Positions 1-49,000 of a stretch of DNA of 64,000 bases are shown piece by piece (position 1 is the first letter of the stretch; each line of letters opens with the position of its first letter). The notes beneath the pieces are model-generated. The model saw only the letters and a list, made by a program, of their open reading frames with translations, had not been told where the DNA came from and did not search any database. A program made the translations under genes and the position numbers. Source of the DNA: Saccostrea cucullata (Eukaryota); assembly GCF_032062105.1 (NCBI RefSeq), contig NW_026929454.1, positions 62,001 to 126,000 on the forward strand. The letters run 5' to 3'.

Positions 1-1993
1 CCACTCTGGCAAACCGGGATAAAACGTTCTGTTTATTGTTCGACTTTCCTCGGTCATATCATTCCACTGAGCACGTGGATGGCATATGCATATTTCTTCT
101 GTGAATAGATGCATTTGTTACCTTTGAATTTTCCATTTGAGAAGTCTTATGTTCATTACAGTGAAAGCAGCTGACAGAAGGTAAAACGTACCTCTGGTAT
201 GTAAAAACGTGAATCTTTGTAATGGTCATGTAATCATTTTCTGCAACTTAGCAGAGTTTCTAAAAACGCCATAAATCTATGTGATTTCAGTTCAGTTATT
301 AGATATCCGTTACTTAAAACTTCACTTTCCGAATTGCCTCTCCTTTTAAGTTGTGTTTGTATAGAGACTATTTGGGGCTCTGCAAGGATGATGATTTTCT
401 TTTTTTTTTTATTTAAAAATGTTAAGCAAAATGCGGTGCATTCGATATCAAATTGTAATTACATGTATTACATTTGGAAAGTAGGTACACGACATGTCAA
501 TATTGTTCAGCAGTTAGATAGAAAAAGTAGTCAGTTTGGGGATTTCCTTCAGGCGCCTCAGAAAAAAATAGACATTCTTTGCTGTACTGTTGGGTATTAG
601 GTCCACACATTGTATGGAGTACTGTTTTGGACATAAAACACGTCAACATGATCATGGAAAAGTAATATTATATTAATGTCCCAAACTGACATACTTCTTC
701 ATGTAATGTTTTTTAAGTCTAATTAAAACGTTTATTGGACGTGTTGAATATTCAATCTGTAGTCAAATATACTTTCACCTGACTGTGTGAAATTGATTTT
801 AAAATATGTTTTGCATCAATTTTGACAGTATATTATATTAAATAGACACATGTAATTAATTTCTTTAATAAAAAATTATCCCACAGTATGATAAAATTTT
901 ACACAAGGTTTCTAACTACTTGGAGTAACCATTTCCACAAATTGTTTTTATATATTTTAATGGCTGTGTTTTGTATTATGTATATTCTAGCTAATTTATT
1001 TAAATGAAGATAGGGAAGAGTTTTGTTCCTGCTGAAAAAAATTTAGATGTCCATAGGAATGTTTCGCCAAAGCTTCAATAGTAATGCAACATGGAAATTT
1101 GTATAATGTTATGGAGTTTTATGAAAATATATTGAATATTAGGTTTTTTTTTAATTTTATACACAAAAAATATTACATGTAAAGTCAAAGGTCATTGGGA
1201 ATTTAAGATCAAGGTTAAAGAGATTTGGACAAATTTGAGAAATTCTCACCAAATAATGTATCAGTGCATAAGCTTTCTTAAAATATATAGAATATACTAA
1301 TAGTTTCTTTGAAACTGGGCTAAACTCACATTTAAGAAAAGTGAGATCAAATATATACAAAGGAAAGACCAAGTTCAAAAAATGATGGCAAATTTACAAG
1401 CTCTCCCCAACATCAGAAGTTTGAGTTGTTTCTTTGATATTTGCAAGAGAGAACAATGTTTGCAGAGAGGGTAAGGCTTACCATCTTTGGCAACAGGGAA
1501 AAGATTTATAGATATAGATATTGTTTTTTTTTTAAATTTGTGTCTGTTATAATAATTCTCTTAAAATTGTGGAATGTTCTGAGTGATCTTCTAAAACTGT
1601 ATTTCATTTTTGTAGATCTACAGGAAAAATCCTATAAAATTTGCATTGAATTTCTATCCTAAAAAGAAATCCATGGTAAAACCAGACTCTTGCCAGTATG
1701 GATAAATCAGAGCCAAATTTTCAATGCCTATACTATGTCAACTTACTTTGCAAAAAAATATGGAAGGATATCCCCCCCCCACCTCGAAAACCCAGTGTTT
1801 TTCAAGGTGTGACCATCTTGCATTACTAAGTATATGATGGAACATGTACTGTCCTTATATTGTTCAAGTATATAATTATTGTTTTTTTTTCTTTACTCTG
1901 TGAAATTGTAGTTTTGAAAATGGGCAAAATAAAGAAAGTAAAAGAAAATTGTTTGGAATTCATTAAATCTTTGAATTGCTCTTAATGATTTCA

Positions 1994-2760
1994 TTATCGG
2001 CCGCAGAAGCGGCCGATATATTTGTGGTTGTGTTAGAAAGTGCACATGGGAAAATAAGAATTTTTTTTTATTAGTTCAGTAAAATAATTCTTAAATGATA
2101 ACATGAATAAAATATTTTAAAAACTTGCTTTAAACTAAGTTTTAATAATTGTTATCATGTTTCAATTACATTATCATTTCGCATCCGATAATTGATAATT
2201 CATACTTAATAAAGTAAAGCTTACAATAGGTACTCCCCATCTTGGGAGTGTGTGAGATACGAAAGGCAATCGTCAACGATGTGATAAAAGTGCATGTGGT
2301 GAATGAAAATTGGGAAAAAAATTCAAGAAAGAGAAATTTTTTTTGAATATGCTATACCAACGAATGGCACAAGAATTATTTTTCTACTTTTGCACCGCGC
2401 CGTGCAGCATAACCAACTCTGCAGAAATCATTAGGCATTATCTCGTGACAAAGATCCAGGGTATCAGCACGTAGTTCACCTTGAGAATCCTACATCTTCA
2501 TTTTGATGACAATAATTTCTTATCATTAATCATTGTCATTATGACCTATATAAGCAAATGCAGTAAAATATTTTTATTAATTAAAAAATAAATATCTATA
2601 TACCGGTATTCTGATTTGATGACAGCCTGAAATAAAAATGATCACTTATCTTGACAAGTGCTTTCCTTGCATGGATGTTTTAATAAAATTGTGAAAGTAC
2701 TTTTTGAAATGCTACATTTTGTTAGCGGCCGATTTAATGCTTTGCATCAATTTTACTTGT
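1994..2760 (+). mobile_element. Non-autonomous Helentron/HINE-like element
   Basis: 5' subTIR plus inverted repeat TTATCGGCCGC-AGAA-GCGGCCGATA; 3' subTIR GCGGCCGAT (~2725) followed by hairpin ATGC-TTT-GCAT and a CTTGT end. Absent from the paralogous copy at ~10030. Confidence 0.6.
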
Positions 2761-2806
2761 ACATTTTGCAATGGAGCTAGCTAGATGTAAATGTTTATAT
2801 GATCAA

Positions 2807-2808
<2 letters not shown>

Positions 2809-2858
<50 letters not shown>
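2809..2858. repeat. (TA)n microsatellite, left flank of the tRNA-unit insertion
   Basis: Pure TA run. Confidence 0.95.
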
Positions 2859-2862
<4 letters not shown>

Positions 2863-2963
2863 CACAATTTACAACAACTCTTAAACTAATATAACTGCCC
2901 TAAGTGAAGAAATATTAATATAGAAAGCACAAAGAAATTCACTTTTACATGGATACCCACTTC

Positions 2964-3052
2964 CGCCCCAGCCCGGGGTTGAACTCTCGACCTACGGAAT
3001 CTGTCTCCTAGCAGTGCAGGAACAGCGCGTTAGACCGCTCGGCTATCTAGGC
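2964..3052 (-). ncRNA. tRNA-Leu-derived Pol III head (inverted copy), not a functional tRNA
   Basis: Reverse complement of the head at 3393. Confidence 0.7.
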
Positions 3053-3392
3053 AAGCTAAAAAACTTGCTTTCGATGCCGATGGAATTCTCACAACGCTGC
3101 CCTACACTACACGGTCATTGAGAATAGAAGTGAGATACAGTTATTTGGACATTAGTTCTTAGAGGATTGTTACCAATACATGTTGTGATGAAATTAATTT
3201 ATTTATATTAGTTTAAGAGTTGTTGTAAATTGTGCTTTATAAATAAATTAATTTCATCACAACATGTATTGGTAACAATCCTCTAAGAACTAATGTCCAA
3301 ATAACTGTATCTCACTTCTATTCTCAATGACCGTGTAGTGTAGGGCAGCGTTGTGAGAATTCCATCGGCATCGAAAGCAAGTTTTTTAGCTT

Positions 3393-3481
3393 GCCTAGAT
3401 AGCCGAGCGGTCTAACGCGCTGTTCCTGCACTGCTAGGAGACAGATTCCGTAGGTCGAGAGTTCAACCCCGGGCTGGGGCG
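3393..3481 (+). ncRNA. tRNA-Leu-derived Pol III head (A and B boxes), not a functional tRNA
   Basis: GCCTAGATAGCCGAGCGGTCTAACGCGCTG matches the Leu-type D-arm/A-box. B-box is GAGTTCAACCC. The anticodon arm is expanded and the T-stem imperfect. Confidence 0.7.
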
Positions 3482-3740
3482 GAAGTGGGTATCCATGTAA
3501 AAGTGAATTTCTTTGTGCTTTCTATATTAATATTTCTTCACTTAGGGCAGTTATATTAGTTTAAGAGTTGTTGTAAATTGTGCTTTATAAATAAATTAAT
3601 TTCATCACAACATGTATTGGTAACAATCCTCTAAGAACTAATGTCCAAATAACTGTATCTCACTTCTATTCTCAATGACCGTGTAGTGTAGGGCAGCGTT
3701 GTGAGAATTCCATCGGCATCGAAAGCAAGTTTTTTAGCTT

Positions 3741-3829
3741 GCCTAGATAGCCGAGCGGTCTAACGCGCTGTTCCTGCACTGCTAGGAGACAGATTCCGTA
3801 GGTCGAGAGTTCAACCCCGGGCTGGGGCG
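3741..3829 (+). ncRNA. tRNA-Leu-derived Pol III head (second direct copy)
   Basis: Identical to 3393-3481, offset by 348 bp. Confidence 0.7.
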
Positions 3830-3867
3830 GAAGTGGGTATCCATGTAAAAGTGAATTTCTTTGTGCT

Positions 3868-3870
<3 letters not shown>

Positions 3871-3933
<63 letters not shown>
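3871..3933. repeat. (TA)n microsatellite, right flank of the tRNA-unit insertion
   Basis: Pure TA run. Confidence 0.95.
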
Positions 3934-3937
<4 letters not shown>

Positions 3938-5024
3938 TAAACCAAGGGCATTCACATCGATTTTATGTGTCTACTTTTCTTTGTGATTCATTGCTGATAA
4001 TTACAATTCTGGTAGTTTAAATAATCATCCATGTCCCACTTAAAAATTCGTAAAATACCACATTTGTTTAATTGCAAGTGGAGACAAGTTCATTCATAAA
4101 TATTGATTTTGATGTTGCACAATTTTCATTGCCTGAAATCAAAGCATTGAAGATTTTTGTTTTACAACAACATGTTCACTATTGAACAACTGTTCAATAA
4201 TAATTATGAATTACTTTAAATCACTATGTTACACAACTCCCCTTATCAATAAGTTTATTAATTTATATATATGTATATTAAAAATATCATTCTTAATGCT
4301 CTTCTACTCTTAAAAATAAAATTAATATATAGGTTGTATAATTTTTACTTTTCTTCATTTCAGACCATTCTGTGCCTCGATAAAAAGAAGTGGTCTGAAA
4401 AAAATTCTGGGCTAAAAATAGATCACATGCTGCTGTCCATGAACTACTTTCATGGTTCTTTACACTCATTCTGAAGACAACAGTGCCTTGTTTTGAACTA
4501 GAAATAACCATTTAACATCGCAAAATTGACATTTTCTCAACACATGGTTGTAGAGGGAACAATAATGCACACTTTGCATATTTTTTGGATTTTTTAAGGC
4601 TGTGCTGAATTGTGTAGCGCAGTTCTAGAGAACACATGAAAAGCATTTTTCTGTAATAGTATAAATTATTTACAAAAAAATGCATTCAGTTATGCATATA
4701 TATTGTATCTTTATCACAAGGACGTTGAAATTTCATTAAATTATAGTGTATTTCAGCCATTTCAAGAAATGTTTACATTTTGTTCTGACTGCACTAAAGG
4801 TGCCCGGACATCCTCCTTAAAATAAACATATATTATCGTACACATTTAGTACTGAAATATATGTAAAAAATTAGATATGGGCATTGTTTAATTCTAAAAA
4901 TGTATGCTTGCAAATCTATGTCGCTTCATTCATTTTAAAATTTCAAGACAAAGTACAATGATAAACCTTTAAAAGATGCTTAGTTTTCGAATAAAATGCT
5001 CCTCTGTTGCCAGCATTGTGCATG

Positions 5025-7576: not shown

Positions 7577-10551
7577 TTAAGGGGGATGTACAAGCCATAT
7601 TGGATCTATTCTGGTCTAAAATAAGAATGCCAAGAATGCGCTTAATACTCTACCAAACTAGCAAAAAGGTTACTCAATGGGCTAATGCACTTATTACCTA
7701 CTGTTAGACACCAAAATTAATTAAAAAAATGATATTTTATGCATTAGAACTGCGCAGCTACAGGATTCAGGAGATGAAAAATGCAGTGAAAATGATGTCA
7801 GTTCGGTTCATTAATAATATGGCTACAATAATTTGTTTTGCTTTTTTCTTGTCATTATCCATAATTCTTGAAAATTTGATTTTTCTTATGGTGGTCTTCC
7901 TGAAGCCATGTGTTCATGATGTCATCCATTCCTCTGTCACACAGAGTGAAAATTATATTGATTTTAGAATAAATGCGACAGTAACAACATCAAGACAAGA
8001 CAATTCTCATAATTATTAGGTTATACAACTTACTACATTTATTTGTTGCATTGCATCGTCTGATTGATGATAAAACGCGATTTTTAACCCCACTCTGGCA
8101 AATCGGGAAGAAAAGTTCTGTCTATCGCTTGAGTTTCCTCGGTCATATCATTCCACAGAGCATGTTGATGGCATATGCACATGTCTTCTGTGAATAGATG
8201 CATTTGTAACCTTTGAATTTTCCATTTGAGAAGTCTTATGTCCATTATTTACAGTGAAAACAGCTGACAGAAGGTTAGACATATTTCTGGTATGTAGAAA
8301 CGTGAATCTTTGTGTGAATCCTTGTAATGAACATGTAATTATTTTCTGCAACTTAGCAGAGTTTCTAAAAACGCTATATATCTATGTGATTTCAGTTCAG
8401 TTATAAGATATCCGTCAATTAAAACTTCAGGTTCCGAATTGCATCTCCTTTAAGTTGTGTTTGTAGAGAGACTATTTGGGGCTCTGCAAGGATGATGATT
8501 TTCTTTGTTTGATTTGAAAATGTTAAGCAAGATGCGGTGCATTCGATATCAAATTGTAATTACATGTATTACATTTGCAAAGTTGGTACACGACATGTCA
8601 ATATTGTCAGCAGTTAGATAGAAAAAGTAGTCAGTTTGGGGATTTCCTTCAGGCGCCTCAGAAAAAATAGACATTCTTTGCTGTACTGTTGGGTATTAGG
8701 TCCACACATTGTATGGAGTACTGTTTTGGACATAAAACACATCAACTTGATCATGAAAAAGTAATATATATATTAATGTCCCAAACTGACATACTTCTTC
8801 ATGTAATGTTTTTTAAAGTCTAATTAAAAAAGTTAATTGGACATGTTGAATATTCAATCTGTAGTCAGATATACTTTTCACCTGACTGTGTGAAATTGAT
8901 TTTAAATATGTTTTGCATCAATTTTGACATTATATTATATAGACACATGCAATTAATTTCTGTAATGAAAAATTACCTCATAGTATGATAAAAGTTTACA
9001 CAAGGTTTCTAACTACTTGGAGTAACCCCTTCCGCAATTGCTTTTATATATTTTAATGGCTGTGTTTTGTATCATGTATATTCTAGCTAATTTATTTAAA
9101 TGAGGATAGGGAAGCGTTTTGTTCCTCATGTTCCTGGTGAAAACAATTCATAAGTCCATAGGATATGAATGTTCCACCCAAGCTTCAACAGTAAAGCAAT
9201 GGAAATTTGTATCATGGTATGGAGTTTCATGAAAATATATTGAATATTAGAATTTTTTTTTTATTCGATACACAAAAAATATTAAAGTCAAAGGTCATTG
9301 GGAATTTAAGATCAAGGTTTAAGAGATTTGGACAAATTTGAGAAATTCTCACCAAATAATGTATCAATGCATGAGCTTTCCTAAAATATATAGAATACAC
9401 CAGTAGTTTCTTTGAAACTGGGCTAAACTCACTTTTTTCAAATATATACAAACGAAAGACCAAGTTAAAAAATGATGGCAAATTAAGAAGCTCTCCCCAA
9501 CATCAGAAGTTTGATAAAATATCTTGAGTTGTTTCTTTGATATTTGCAAGAGAGAACAATGTTTGCAGAGAGGTTAAGGCTTATCATCTTTGGCAACAGG
9601 GAAAAGATTTATAGATATTGTTTTTTTAAATTTGTGTCTGTTATAATGATTCTCTTAAAATTGTGGAATGTTCTGAGTTTATCTTCTAAAACTGTATTTC
9701 ATTTTTGTAGATCTACGAGGAAAATCCTATGAAATTTGCATTGAATTTCTATCCTAAAAAAAATCCATGGTAAAACCAGACTCTTGCCAGTATGGATAAA
9801 TCAGAGCCAACTTTTCAATGCCTATACTATGTCCATCTTTGCAAATAAATGTTGGAGGATACCCCCCCCCCCGAAAACCCAGGGTTTTTCAAGATATGAC
9901 CATCTTGCATTACAAAGTATATGATGGAACATATACTGTCCTTATATTGTTCAAATATAATTATTGATTTTTTTCTATTCTGTGAAATTCTAGTTTTGAA
10001 AATGGGCAAAAAAAAGAAAGTAAAAGAAATTGTTTATATGATAAAATGTATATATATGTACTAAAACAAGGGCATTCACATGGATTTTAAGTGTCTACTT
10101 TTCTTTGTGATTCATTGCTGTCAATTACAATTCTGGTAGTTAAAATAATCATCCATGTCCCACTTAAAAATTCGTAAAATACCACATTTGTTTCATTGCA
10201 AGTTGAGAAATTTCATTCATTAATTTTGATTTTGATGTTGTACATTTTTCGTTGCCTGGAATCAAAGCATTGAAGATTTTTGTTTTATAACAACATGTTC
10301 ACTATAAAACAATTGTTCAATGATAATTATGAATTACTTTAAATCACTATGTTACAAAACTCCCCTTATCAATATGTTTATCAACTTTATGTATTTCTTT
10401 AAATATCATTCTTAATTCTCTTCTATTTGTAAAAATAAAATTAATGTAGAGGTTGCATAATTTTTACTTTTCTTCATTTCAGACCATTCTGTGCCTCGAT
10501 AATAAGAAGTTGTCTGGAAAAAATTCTGGGCTAACAATAGATCACATGCTG
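7577..10551. mobile_element. Copy 2 of the TTAA-flanked DNA transposon, truncated by the Gypsy insertion
   Basis: Starts TTAA|GGGGGATGT. 8090-10551 is homologous to 1-~4430 without the HINE and the tRNA array. Homology stops at CACATGCTG, where the LTR starts. Confidence 0.6.
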
Positions 10552-11422
10552 TGTCGGGGATGTATTCCGGAATTCTGATTATCCGCCATGAACAGTCTAG
10601 ATTTATGTTAAACTATTTTTGTCAATTAACCTGTTCCTGATTTATTCGACTTCAGTTCTCTAACTCCCTTATTTTAGTGAATTCTTAGCATTGGGTTGAT
10701 AATCTAATTTGTGAATTAACATTGTAGTATCCTTGTGTATTTAATATTTCGTTTGTAGTGAATAGAATAGTATTTGCTACCTGGTGTCCAACGAAATACG
10801 CACGGACGGTTTATCTACTTTATCCCAAGGGGGCATGTAACACCTGGGGTCTAAGTAGATGTGGGGAGTGCCGAGCACGCGGTTTGGGGAGAACAAAGAA
10901 GGCTGTTGAGATAGGCAGACGTATTTAGGTTTATGCAGACGTAGTTAGGTTGATTGTATGTACATGGGTACTTGAGTTAGGAAGATTTCTATATTTCCTA
11001 GTATCTAACTATTAATAGACAATAGGGTTGTTGGACTGTTTTGTCCTGTTTATTAATTTGGTTGATTCGTGGCCTGTTGAGGGTGCTGGAATCTGGGTTC
11101 ATACTAATTAAGTGCATGACTGTCGCTTTACGTTGTTTGTAAAGGTGGGACCCTGTATTTTGTTCTATTGTGTCAGTCTTTGCGGTAGAGCACTGGTTTG
11201 GTTTTTGTCTGCCGTTTTGTTGGCTTAGTATGATTTCTTAGCATGTTTTGTAAATACGTTGAATATATTTAGTCTGTATATACGTTGAGCTTATTTGTAT
11301 ATTTTGGCAGCGCACATTAGTCATAGTTCTATCTATCCTTAAGGTCTGAATTTTATCAGACCCGATCCCTGAGTGTTGTAGGGAGGCCGGTTCGGTTCTA
11401 ATCCGTCCCCTTACACGTTACA
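10552..11422 (+). repeat. 5' LTR of the Gypsy element (TG...CA, ~870 bp)
   Basis: Begins TGTCGGGG exactly at the breakpoint with the paralogous sequence and ends GTTACA just before the primer site. Confidence 0.75.
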
Positions 11423-45739: not shown

Positions 45740-46044
45740 CGATGATCGATCGTTGATTTACTGATTGTATATTGTTTAACGCTCCTTCTCGAGAATTTTT
45801 CACTCACGACACCACTTGCCGGTAAAGAGCTGCAAATTTTGACCTACACTCGGCACTCAGGGCCATTGAGCAGTGAGGGATCTTTTTGCTGTCAGCACCT
45901 ACTGCGACATGAAAACTCGGTTTATACGGTCTCATCCGAAGGACCGGTCTCCACGTCCCACAGTAGGATTCGAACTGCGACTTACGGATCAATTCCTTAC
46001 CTCGCGACTCCAGAGCAGACGCTCTAACCACTGCGCCACGTGGG
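45740..46044 (-). mobile_element. tRNA-derived SINE with Deu/Nin-like core
   Basis: Minus strand: A-box TGGCGCAGTGG, B-box GTTCGAATCC, core CTTCGGATGAGACCGTATAAACCGAG...AAAGATCCC, tail GTTAAACAATATACAATC. Confidence 0.8.
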
Positions 46045-49000
46045 AGACACCAACTTTATGAAATAAATATTCAGAACTACCCAAGCTGGTACCTCTAATG
46101 GATATCATTTAAAATATTAACCATTCAATGTTTGATCTCATTCGTCAACAGATTCATTAAAACACTTTTAAAACGATGGCCGATTGATTTAACAGCCAAC
46201 CTCTGAATACACATGAATATATCACTAAAATCGAATATTTTTTTTTTTTGCTTTACAAAATTATGTACAATGTAACATAAAAATGATTTCTTGACTATTT
46301 TCAAGAGTTTTATAATCATTCTTTTAAAATCATTCATTTTTATTAACATCTCCATTCATATCTGGAACACAGACATACGAATTAACAGGATTTGGCAGTA
46401 CAATGACCAAAATTGTCGATAAAAGTACACTTGTTAAAACATATTCAAAGCATTTTATGAATTAAACTAATTGTTTATTGTACTCATGCCAACAAAATTC
46501 GAAACCAACTTACAACTGGGAACATTTTTTTCTCGAGTATAAGAGTGGAAAAATTTTCAAAATAGATAAATTGTAAAATCTTACTGACACGATAACTTTT
46601 AGTTGGTCTAGAAAATGAAATGAAAGTTTAGACAAAGAATAGAATTTAAAAAATAAAGCTTTAAATGCACGAGTTCAAATTCGGTGTGTTAATGAATTCG
46701 TCAAATGAAATTTAAGACTTCCTTATGTTAATTATTTGCAATGACTGTCTAAGGAATCAGGCGAGGAACTCATCAGTTAAATTTAATTGTCATTTGTAAA
46801 TCAATAACAGTATATGAATGAGTCGTAACGTTTCTATATAATGTCATGCACATGCAATGGCACATCGGACTAAGGGAGGAACAAAATGAGTCCATACAAA
46901 CAAATAAAATACACTCAGATATGATATTAAAAATAATTCAATTAAACTCATGTTATCGATACATTTACTAGTCTAAAAATAATTTCTCTTTTTCATTGCT
47001 ATAAAAAGAATTCAGTTAAATTATTAAAGCATATGAAAAGTTTGTGAGCTTTGCTACAACATTTCGATATAACAACAGCACTAAATCAAGCAAAAACATT
47101 CAAATTAACATTAAGTTGTTTCTTTATTTTCCTGTTAACTACAAATAAAAGATGCTACAGTGTCTAACACATATGTTTCATACATGTATGCGGTTGTTTT
47201 AATAAAGACATTGACTAAAACTGAAAACTAACAGAAAGCTAACGGAAACTGAAAACTAACTTGTCATATACATTATAACTTCATATTCTTTTATTAACTA
47301 ATATATTTTCATAATTTCAAAAAATTTCATAATCTATATATTAAATATATACCTGATGTTCCAAAAATTATTTCTTTTTTAAATTATCCCCTTGCATTCG
47401 TCTTTGGCGTTGTCTAATTATAAAAAGAAAGCATAGAAATATGGATATCTAGCTATAGAAAAAGGTGTGACAAGGATGGCTAGCCCATAGCTGTTTTGGT
47501 ATCATACAAGATAAAAATCTTAAATAGCTAAAAGTATGAAGCATCTTTTACTCGTATCAAAAACGTTAAGGCAGCCATGATTGTATATGGTATAGTATTT
47601 AACAAAGTATCGTAAAAAAATATTTCATAAATTTGTAATCATTTACTTTTTGTTGCATTATCTGAATATTATATTATTGGTGACCAAATGTTTTATTGAA
47701 AGATCTTGAATACTGTTCATCATCTCCATATATTTCATCTAATACACTTACACATGTAATCATGTACATGGCACTAATTTCTTCTAAATGTGATTGTTCA
47801 CGATATTAGCGTCACAATTATGATTGATAAACGAAGTGAATTCATAAAAAACCTTCCAATTTTTTTTTAGAAAATAATATTAGCATGACTATATGGAATG
47901 AATGTCCTCATCCATTATATTTTAGCTTATTTCTATCAATGACATTTTATTTTATCTTTTAGAATATAAGAAAATATTTTAAAACAAGAAAAGAATTTTT
48001 CAGCATCGATAAAATTTATGGCTTCACTCTGTAGGAAAAAAATCTCTATTTTTTATCAATTGATTTGTATGGCAACAGCTCTCTTTGAAATATAAGAATA
48101 CAATTTGTGTTTCTATATAAAAAATTAAAATTACGAAAAAGAACAGAAAATGTACCTCTTCATTCATTTTTAACTTTCTCACATTGATAAGGAATATAGC
48201 CTATTTTTGAATTGCATAAGCAAATTACATTATACATTTTCTACGCCTTTTTTGCCATATCCAGATAGAAGGGGGCATAATTCATAGAAATCATCAATTT
48301 ACATTCAAAATATATCACTGAAAGGGGGGGGGGCTTCATAAAGGTTTGGAAATGAACAATGGTTGTGACAAACAAAATATATATACAGTATACACTCTAT
48401 AAAACAAATCCGTAAACAGGGCAAAAACACCGACTCCCAGAAAGTTACTGTTAGCCGGTTACATTTTCGTGATCTCTTATACTATAGTACAAAATAATTA
48501 GTATAAAACTAATACCTTACAATTGGTATTATACAGATATAGACCAATTGATAGATTTTTATTGCCTATCATGCCCTATAACGACGATTGAATTTTTTAA
48601 ATGAAAGAGTCAAACAACTGTATTGACATCCCTGGAACATAAACTTATCTGTCAATAGCCCACATTCTTTCATTATTACATACATATTCAGTTGAGGATA
48701 AAAAAAGCTGAAGTAATCTCATTTATCATACAATTTGGTTCATAATTTGCCCTTGTTATTTGTAGTAACTAAACCCTCCAAATAAAAAAAAAACAGATGC
48801 TGCAGACTACGTTTATTTCATGTTTGAATCGACATGTTATTGGGAATCAATGTTGATATCTGATATAAAAAACAATCTAATGAACCTTTTTCCTTGAATG
48901 ACATTTAATTAAAACTATATTAAAGGCACAAGGGCAGAGATACTACGTGCCGTCATACTTGGGCAGAGTTTACTAATTGGAATTGGTTGAGGTATTTGGA

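Follow-up and report, generated by a model that had tools for sequence, protein, structure and literature searches.

What is the 348-nt unit that lies between two long TA runs in an oyster contig, and how did its copies come to stand there in inverted and in tandem order? The window studied here is a stretch of 64,000 nucleotides of Saccostrea cucullata. From its letters alone, the original prediction described a non-coding element with a tRNA-like head that had been copied into a (TA)n microsatellite, possibly by the reverse transcriptase (RT) of a Penelope-like element (PLE). Positions within the unit are given below as q1-348, corresponding to window 3238-3585 (the reference unit). The features of the locus are:

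2810-2859: left (TA)25 run, next to the 3' end (site B) with which the inverted arm faces outward
2860-3207, minus strand: inverted arm, one complete 348-nt unit running from q348 to q1
2965-3051, minus strand: q157-243 of the inverted unit, derived from tRNA-Leu and carrying motifs that resemble A and B boxes
3203-3207: inversion junction, a TA-rich self-complementary overlap of the arms of about 5 nt
3203-3237, plus strand: first unit of the direct arm, 5'-truncated to its final 35 nt (q314-348)
3238-3585, plus strand: full direct unit, 40% G+C, no ORF
3376-3393, plus strand: hairpin GCAAG-T6-AGCTTGC directly upstream of the tRNA-like segment
3394-3480, plus strand: tRNA-Leu-derived segment of the reference unit (q157-243)
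3514-3527, plus strand: site A (TGTGCTTTCTATAT) inside the unit, used in the family as the other 3' terminus
3586 to about 3875, plus strand: final partial direct unit, which ends at site A and runs in phase into TA
3742-3828, plus strand: third tRNA-like segment, within the final partial direct unit
3871-3932: right (TA)31 run
about 10030-10065: paralogous empty site with (TA)4 only

The layout was confirmed as first described. The element (window 2860-3875) consists of one inverted unit followed by 1.95 direct units, where about 1.9 had been estimated, and its copies are 99-100% identical. Comparison of the direct copies gave 100% identity across 300 nt, and the inverted arms showed 99% complementarity across 359 nt. 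The outer end of the inverted arm at 2860 is site B (..AATTGTGCTTT, then the TA run). The element contains no ORF of at least 60 aa and no poly-A, as had been stated. The two flanking runs are the only (TA) runs of at least eight repeats in the whole window.

The flanks of the element belong to a local segmental duplication, in which window 1800-1954 and 3934-4437 correspond to 9887-10555 with 90-91% identity, and which is the source of the empty site. The paralogous sequence reads ...GATAAAATG(TA)4TGTACTAAA... and lacks the element, in agreement with the earlier reading. As this copy joins the flanks by (TA)4 without the element, the element in the window is younger than the duplication of its flanks. 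The long TA runs either grew at the filled copy or arrived with the insertion, and since the empty site has just (TA)4, they may partly stem from the insertion itself. The proposed insertion into (TA)n therefore stands in so far as nearly all termini of the family abut TA runs, and needs qualification in so far as long runs may partly be an insertion product. Next to the element, window 1955-2790 holds about 835 bp without a counterpart in the paralogous copy (window ~10035). This segment has inverted CGGCCGC/GCGGCCG motifs, shows raised depth at 2699-2747 in a DNA run, and is probably a separate small mobile element.

To see the unit in other places we searched the 1.17-Gb assembly of this ostreid genome, whose best protein matches come from Saccostrea, Crassostrea and Ostrea. 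At first look at least 1138 candidates of the family were found, and a 22-mer taken from the tRNA-like head had 546 exact matches genome-wide, corresponding to at least 546 units. Exact matches of a terminus fused to a TA run numbered 363 for site A and 168 for site B, compared with 0-3 for reversed controls. Among the best-scoring matches, 24 further loci were fetched, and 25 independent insertion complexes were parsed. Two arms were present in 19 of the 25 complexes and one arm in the other six, and breakpoints and unit numbers differed at every locus. Two loci (L042 and L043, on G000:C5633 and C11909) carry the same double complex and flanks with slightly different identity, and probably represent haplotigs or a duplication of recent date. 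Inside the TA runs of older complexes, newer ones of the unit also occur.

These counts bear on the possibility that the palindrome and tandem at the window locus were produced by the assembly. Short-read assemblies are known to struggle with PLE-type structures (PMC8557442), and none of the contigs examined spans the window locus. Against an artefact, 19/25 complexes repeat the architecture with different breakpoints and unique flanks, and it also recurs in an autonomous element of this genome and in the chromosome-level assembly of Ostrea edulis, both described below. An architecture shared by the family is neither a local accident nor an assembly artefact, and we regard the latter as extremely improbable.

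The arms of the complexes have a strict orientation and two preferred ends. In all 19 two-armed complexes the order was minus then plus, with the 3' ends outward (p=2e-6), and arm length ranged from 0.14 to 7.3 units in the 25 complexes. Of the 44 arms, 41 had their 3' end at site A (TGTGCTTTCTATAT, q277-290) or site B (AATTGTGCTTT, where q348 meets q1); one arm ended instead at a third spot rich in TA (q321). Sites A and B both end in GTGCTTT, after which the TA run continues in phase. One A end was combined with one B end in 15 of the 17 classifiable complexes (p=0.001), and as a result of this pairing a tail of 62 nt is found at one end only. The 5' ends of the 44 arms were scattered over the unit. 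Among the inner ends, 16 of 38 fell in three TA-rich windows that make up 15% of the unit (p=5e-5, for windows defined post hoc), and at the inner joint the arms overlapped by 2-9 nt or were separated by filler of up to 24 nt.

Previously, PLE insertions have been described as strongly 5'-truncated, with partial tandems and often with an adjacent inverted 5'-truncated copy (Craig et al., PMC8557442). The same source reports that a short tail of 30-40 bp is confined to one end, and that Naiad, Hydra and Neptune PLEs are biased to (TA)n. By structure the insertions of the unit are of this type, with 5' truncation, tandem and inverted copies, a one-sided tail and a (TA)n bias; the tail, at 62 nt, exceeds the 30-40 bp of that description. 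The insertion signature suggested from a single locus was thus reproduced by the outward 3' ends, the variable 5' ends and the one-sided tail of the family, as were the TA flanks and, in the complexes parsed, the frequent inversion.

The tRNA-Leu-derived segment with its A-box-like and B-box-like motifs and the upstream T6 could also belong to a tRNA SINE that was moved by a LINE and grew into arrays by unequal crossing-over, or to a tandem TRIM of the Helenus type, as Helenus, which can be arranged in tandem, is present in Crassostrea gigas (PMC10886601). If the unit were a plain SINE, monomers starting at the tRNA head would be expected. None of the 44 5' ends lay at the head (q150-165), and unit sequence almost always preceded the heads: the exact junction upstream of the head occurred 350 times, compared with about 380 expected if unit sequence preceded every head, and solitary heads were also preceded by it. 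The reading as head-first monomers, which had been named as an outcome that would speak against the original prediction, was therefore not supported. No A-rich or LINE-like tail and no target-site duplications were detected in the complexes examined, and 19/25 of them have inverted arms. Judged from ends, arms and flanks, fixed 5' ends, an LTR/PBS/PPT layout and 4-5-bp duplications are also absent. Both forms of this explanation are highly improbable.

The comparison with the two named classes leads to the same result. SINE2 elements, like the unit, have a degenerate tRNA segment with A-/B-box-like motifs and a length of a few hundred nt, are non-coding and borrow their RT. Their insertions, however, are monomers from the tRNA head with a LINE-related or simple-repeat tail and target-site duplications, whereas in the unit the tRNA segment is internal, the insertions are multimers in inverted and tandem order, and a PLE rather than a LINE is the apparent partner. 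The unit is not a classical SINE, since its tRNA-Leu segment lies mid-unit and no copy begins there; SINE2 was ruled out by the internal tRNA segment, the multimeric inverted insertions and the lack of a target-site duplication or LINE tail. Helenus/TRIMp3 shares with the unit a captured tRNA-derived Pol III-type module in a non-autonomous element that is not a SINE, and Helenus is likewise present in oysters and able to form tandem arrays (PMC10886601). Helenus has LTRs, PBS, PPT and 4-5-bp duplications (PMC10886601), in contrast to the variable 5' ends, inverted arms and (TA)n flanks of the unit, by which Helenus/TRIMp3 was ruled out.

The tRNA-like segment itself is degenerate. At default settings ARAGORN called no tRNA in the element, and at 70% of the normal threshold it drew q157-243 as a class II cloverleaf whose T arm and anticodon arm are weak. 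The Rfam tRNA model had no match on the element, nor on a 116-nt stretch of it alone. The sole ARAGORN call in the window is a tRNA-Ser(GGA) gene at 45955-46045 on the minus strand. We then aligned the unit to the real tRNA-Leu genes of the genome, which were found by a D-arm pattern: 23 of 25 bases match in the D-arm region, and the unit has retained the B-box-like GAGTTCAACCC. On these two grounds "tRNA-Leu-derived and degenerate" is a fair description, and the mid-unit position claimed for the tRNA-Leu-like head was found to be correct. Per-site conservation of the A and B boxes was not clearly above that of the rest of the unit. The predicted fold of the unit RNA (z = -2.7), in which the tRNA-like part pairs with q97-140, is suggestive of a compact structure. 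The T6 upstream of the segment could be a Pol III terminator. Pol III drive of the unit, as first proposed, is putative and compatible with the data.

Within a complex the units are copies of one sequence. Unit identity within a locus was 99.2%, with same-strand and opposite-strand pairs alike, as compared to 96.6% between loci. The length of the T-run in the hairpin loop was common to every unit in most arrays, and to both arms where two exist; locus-specific variants were likewise common to all units and both arms of a complex. The identity within loci and the common T-run length indicate one template sequence per complex.

Whether this template was RNA or DNA has to be weighed, because the unit occurs in tandem arrays and as long inverted repeats, and Tc1/mariner elements target TA. 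A satellite or foldback palindrome could have formed at the DNA level, by recombination, extrachromosomal circles or a DNA transposase, and the RNA support for the unit consists of assembled contigs without mapped ends. The unit was present in such contigs from four RNA-seq libraries. In one library the summed word depth was ~10^5 on the unit and 11-181 on the unique flanks, and this unit/flank ratio exceeds that in a DNA run of the same organism, with the reservation that these assembled contigs have neither strand nor ends, that depth is a poor measure and that DNA carry-over is possible. In another library a contig of 379 nt crosses the unit boundary. An explanation at the DNA level is, however, difficult to combine with fixed 3' ends, variable 5' ends and outer ends that differ (A versus B). 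Fixed ends are not expected from reintegration of circles, and since breakpoints and unit numbers change from locus to locus, no defined DNA element has been cut and pasted. Furthermore, the anatomy mirrors that of an RT-encoding element of the same genome. We therefore consider a repeat that arose without an RNA intermediate very unlikely.

Based on a search for GIY-YIG endonucleases, with 150 scored matches among 1458 candidates, a candidate autonomous partner was identified in the genome. Among the 150 scored matches, paired matches on a contig ran minus then plus in 26 cases versus 2, an outward-facing order like that of the unit's arms. One locus, 2 kb from an array of the unit, carries an intact element:

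L052:652-3414: intact PLE with a 920-aa ORF, RT (RVT_1) followed by a C-terminal GIY-YIG (domain matches)

Its translation contains the linker CSDRRCLLC (CX5CxxC) and C..C inside the GIY-YIG core. Neptune PLEs have a C-terminal GIY-YIG behind the RT, a CX2-5CxxC linker, an internal CCHH and a hammerhead in the pseudo-LTR, and by comparison with these features the element is classified from its sequence as Neptune-like. The hammerhead core, CTGAGGA..GAAA in the 3' UTR (L052:3955-4010), was read by eye, as were a possible helix I TTGTC/GACAA, helix II GGGAC/GTCCC and a palindromic AATT as helix III around it. We take it to be a minimal dimer-acting type I hammerhead ribozyme. The Rfam hammerhead models gave no score on this 3' UTR, even with a 111-nt query. 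As the by-eye PLE hammerhead is missed by all models, a blank Rfam result is weak evidence and does not exclude minimal PLE ribozymes. Beside another array of the unit, an ORF at L032:7375-9369 on the minus strand (G000:C4869) encodes 664 aa with a PIF1-like helicase and an AP-endonuclease; it is Helentron-like and was rejected as unrelated.

The termini of the Neptune-like PLE resemble those of the unit in position and motif. The PLE has two alternative termini 83 nt apart, TAGTGCTTT followed by (A/T)TATA, and the pattern of terminus plus TA occurred 672 times in the genome versus 0 for the control. The segment between the two termini recurs at a head-to-tail junction upstream of the ORF, and all four PLE-family ends in the fetched loci continue into TA runs. 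The GTGCTTT end is kept in a PLE subfamily with 83% identity. It is found also in a PLE of Ostrea edulis (OX387709.1, chromosome-level), which is 60% identical and ends in GTGCTTT at L061:3607-3760 and 9401-9455, where one side carries the tail, the opposite side ends short, and each is followed by (TA)22-24. Thus GTGCTTT stands directly at the TA junction in both termini of the unit and in both termini of the PLE. Similarity between unit and PLE does not extend past about 20 nt around this motif: when the unit was compared with the entire PLE by sensitive BLAST, the terminal motif alone matched, and not significantly, as 10 of 100 shuffles matched the score. The argument for a connection consequently relies on the position of the motif, since the BLAST similarity is not significant. 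An autonomous PLE with a common terminal sequence had been named as something to look for; what was found is a shared GTGCTTT at the TA junction, with no significant overall alignment.

Beyond the termini, the Neptune-like PLE has in common with the unit the (TA)n target, the 5' truncation, partial tandems, an inverted neighbour copy and a one-sided tail. It differs in that it encodes RT and GIY-YIG and has the hammerhead core seen by eye in its 3' UTR, both of which the unit lacks; the unit has its tRNA-Leu-derived segment at about the place of this hammerhead. A PLE reverse transcriptase as the copier, which had been put forward as a possibility, is favoured by the intact PLE alongside, the same terminal motif, the (TA)n target and the head-to-head pairing.

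A different PLE family could drive the unit by the same route, for example a Naiad with an N-terminal endonuclease. Naiads prefer (TA)n, are very abundant in oysters and, as the unit, have no hammerheads, and the similarity of the unit to the Neptune-like PLE is a short motif only, in a comparison of termini that covered, of the PLE families of the genome, the Neptune-like one. On the other hand, GTGCTTT is found at the TA junction in four independent termini, two of the unit and two of the Neptune-like PLE, and the termini are paired in both, 62 nt apart in the unit and 83 nt apart in the PLE. Another family as the driver is, in our view, unlikely.

Other small elements are already thought to depend on PLEs. 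Metazoan non-LTR retrozymes share with the unit short (170-400 nt) non-coding tandem units of low G+C at many loci, high abundance in RNA, co-occurrence with PLEs and a presumed dependence on these for movement (PMC7229834; bioRxiv 10.64898/2026.07.22.740005). In mussels the retrozyme units measure about 350-390 nt, close in size to 348 nt (same sources). The defining feature of retrozymes is that each unit has a type I hammerhead (PMC7229834; bioRxiv 10.64898/2026.07.22.740005), and the oyster unit lacks one. As the hammerhead core CUGANGA is absent from both strands, the unit is not a retrozyme, and the relation to retrozymes that had been suggested was rejected as an identity. No Rfam ribozyme family matched the element at E up to 10, and matches to plant-miRNA hairpins in Rfam were spurious, resulting from the palindrome.

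The second group is formed by MRC1 and other non-autonomous Chlamys elements of Chlamydomonas (PMC8557442). Like the unit they lack RT, have pseudo-LTRs or head-to-tail multicopy insertions, and insert into microsatellites. Their 3' end resembles the autonomous element, as may be so for the unit by its GTGCTTT. They differ from the unit in host kingdom and PLE clade, and the likeness of the unit to its partner, unlike theirs, is restricted to the terminal motif. The unit has a tRNA-derived module, and the passages of PMC8557442 drawn on here mention none for the Chlamys derivatives.

Taken together, we find it probable that the unit is a retroelement, non-coding and non-autonomous, that the RT and GIY-YIG endonuclease of a PLE, most likely of the Neptune-like family, copy into the genome. 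In the mechanism that we propose, the tRNA-Leu-derived segment would serve as a putative internal Pol III promoter, with A and B boxes and T6 just upstream, and a putative Pol III transcript that began at the head and stopped at the following T6 would have nearly the exact length of one unit. The PLE endonuclease would break a (TA)n tract, and both 3'-OH ends would anneal to the UA-rich sites A and B beside GTGCUUU on one template RNA. Both ends could do so because (TA)n is self-complementary. Each annealed 3'-OH end would then prime reverse transcription, giving two cDNAs of the same sense that are inverted in the DNA. Two primers on one template must use different sites, from which one A end and one B end would follow. 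The two cDNAs would finally be joined mid-complex via short self-complementary TA-rich microhomologies; many of the observed arm joints fall in TA-rich microhomology.

The template would have to be longer than one unit, because full units lie downstream of an internal start, and could be a read-through multimer, a circle or one RNA on which the RT jumps repeatedly. T6 is copied through intact, so the template was not cut at this point. For a young family, arms of up to 7 units speak for a mechanism by which length is restored. A circular RNA template, part of what was originally proposed, is putative and compatible with the data.

A broader reading combines three further steps. The unit may multiply through a unit-length circular or reiteratively copied RNA, as a ribozyme-free counterpart of retrozymes in which the tRNA-derived module replaces the hammerhead. 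The rule of one A and one B end may be general for PLE integration, with two 3'-OH ends that prime at neighbouring UA-rich sites of a single template. It is also a possibility that the telomerase-related RT lengthens the flanking TA runs, as the empty site has (TA)4 and the filled site (TA)25 and (TA)31. That all three hold jointly seems doubtful to us.

As to novelty, the literature searched held no account of a PLE passenger with a tRNA module. The expression "undescribed system" is nevertheless too strong, since PLE-dependent non-autonomous elements are already known, and the unit is best filed among these.

According to authors who study PLEs, the integration of these elements is still undefined (PMC8557442). 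The young, high-copy 348-nt unit offers a compact natural substrate for the rules of PLE insertion, as it is without coding sequence and without ribozyme. With it one could study, in silico as well as in vitro, the motif at the termini, the pairing of priming sites and the joints at microhomologies. Priming at A and B on a single template, if true, would account at once for the inverted copy, for the tandem copies and for the tail on one side. Elements such as this one would be missed by the usual SINE criteria of bivalve surveys, which are a 5' tRNA head and target-site duplications (PMC10294476). The unit also suggests that, beyond LINE-dependent SINEs and LTR-type TRIMs, a further class of retroelement can take up a tRNA-derived module.
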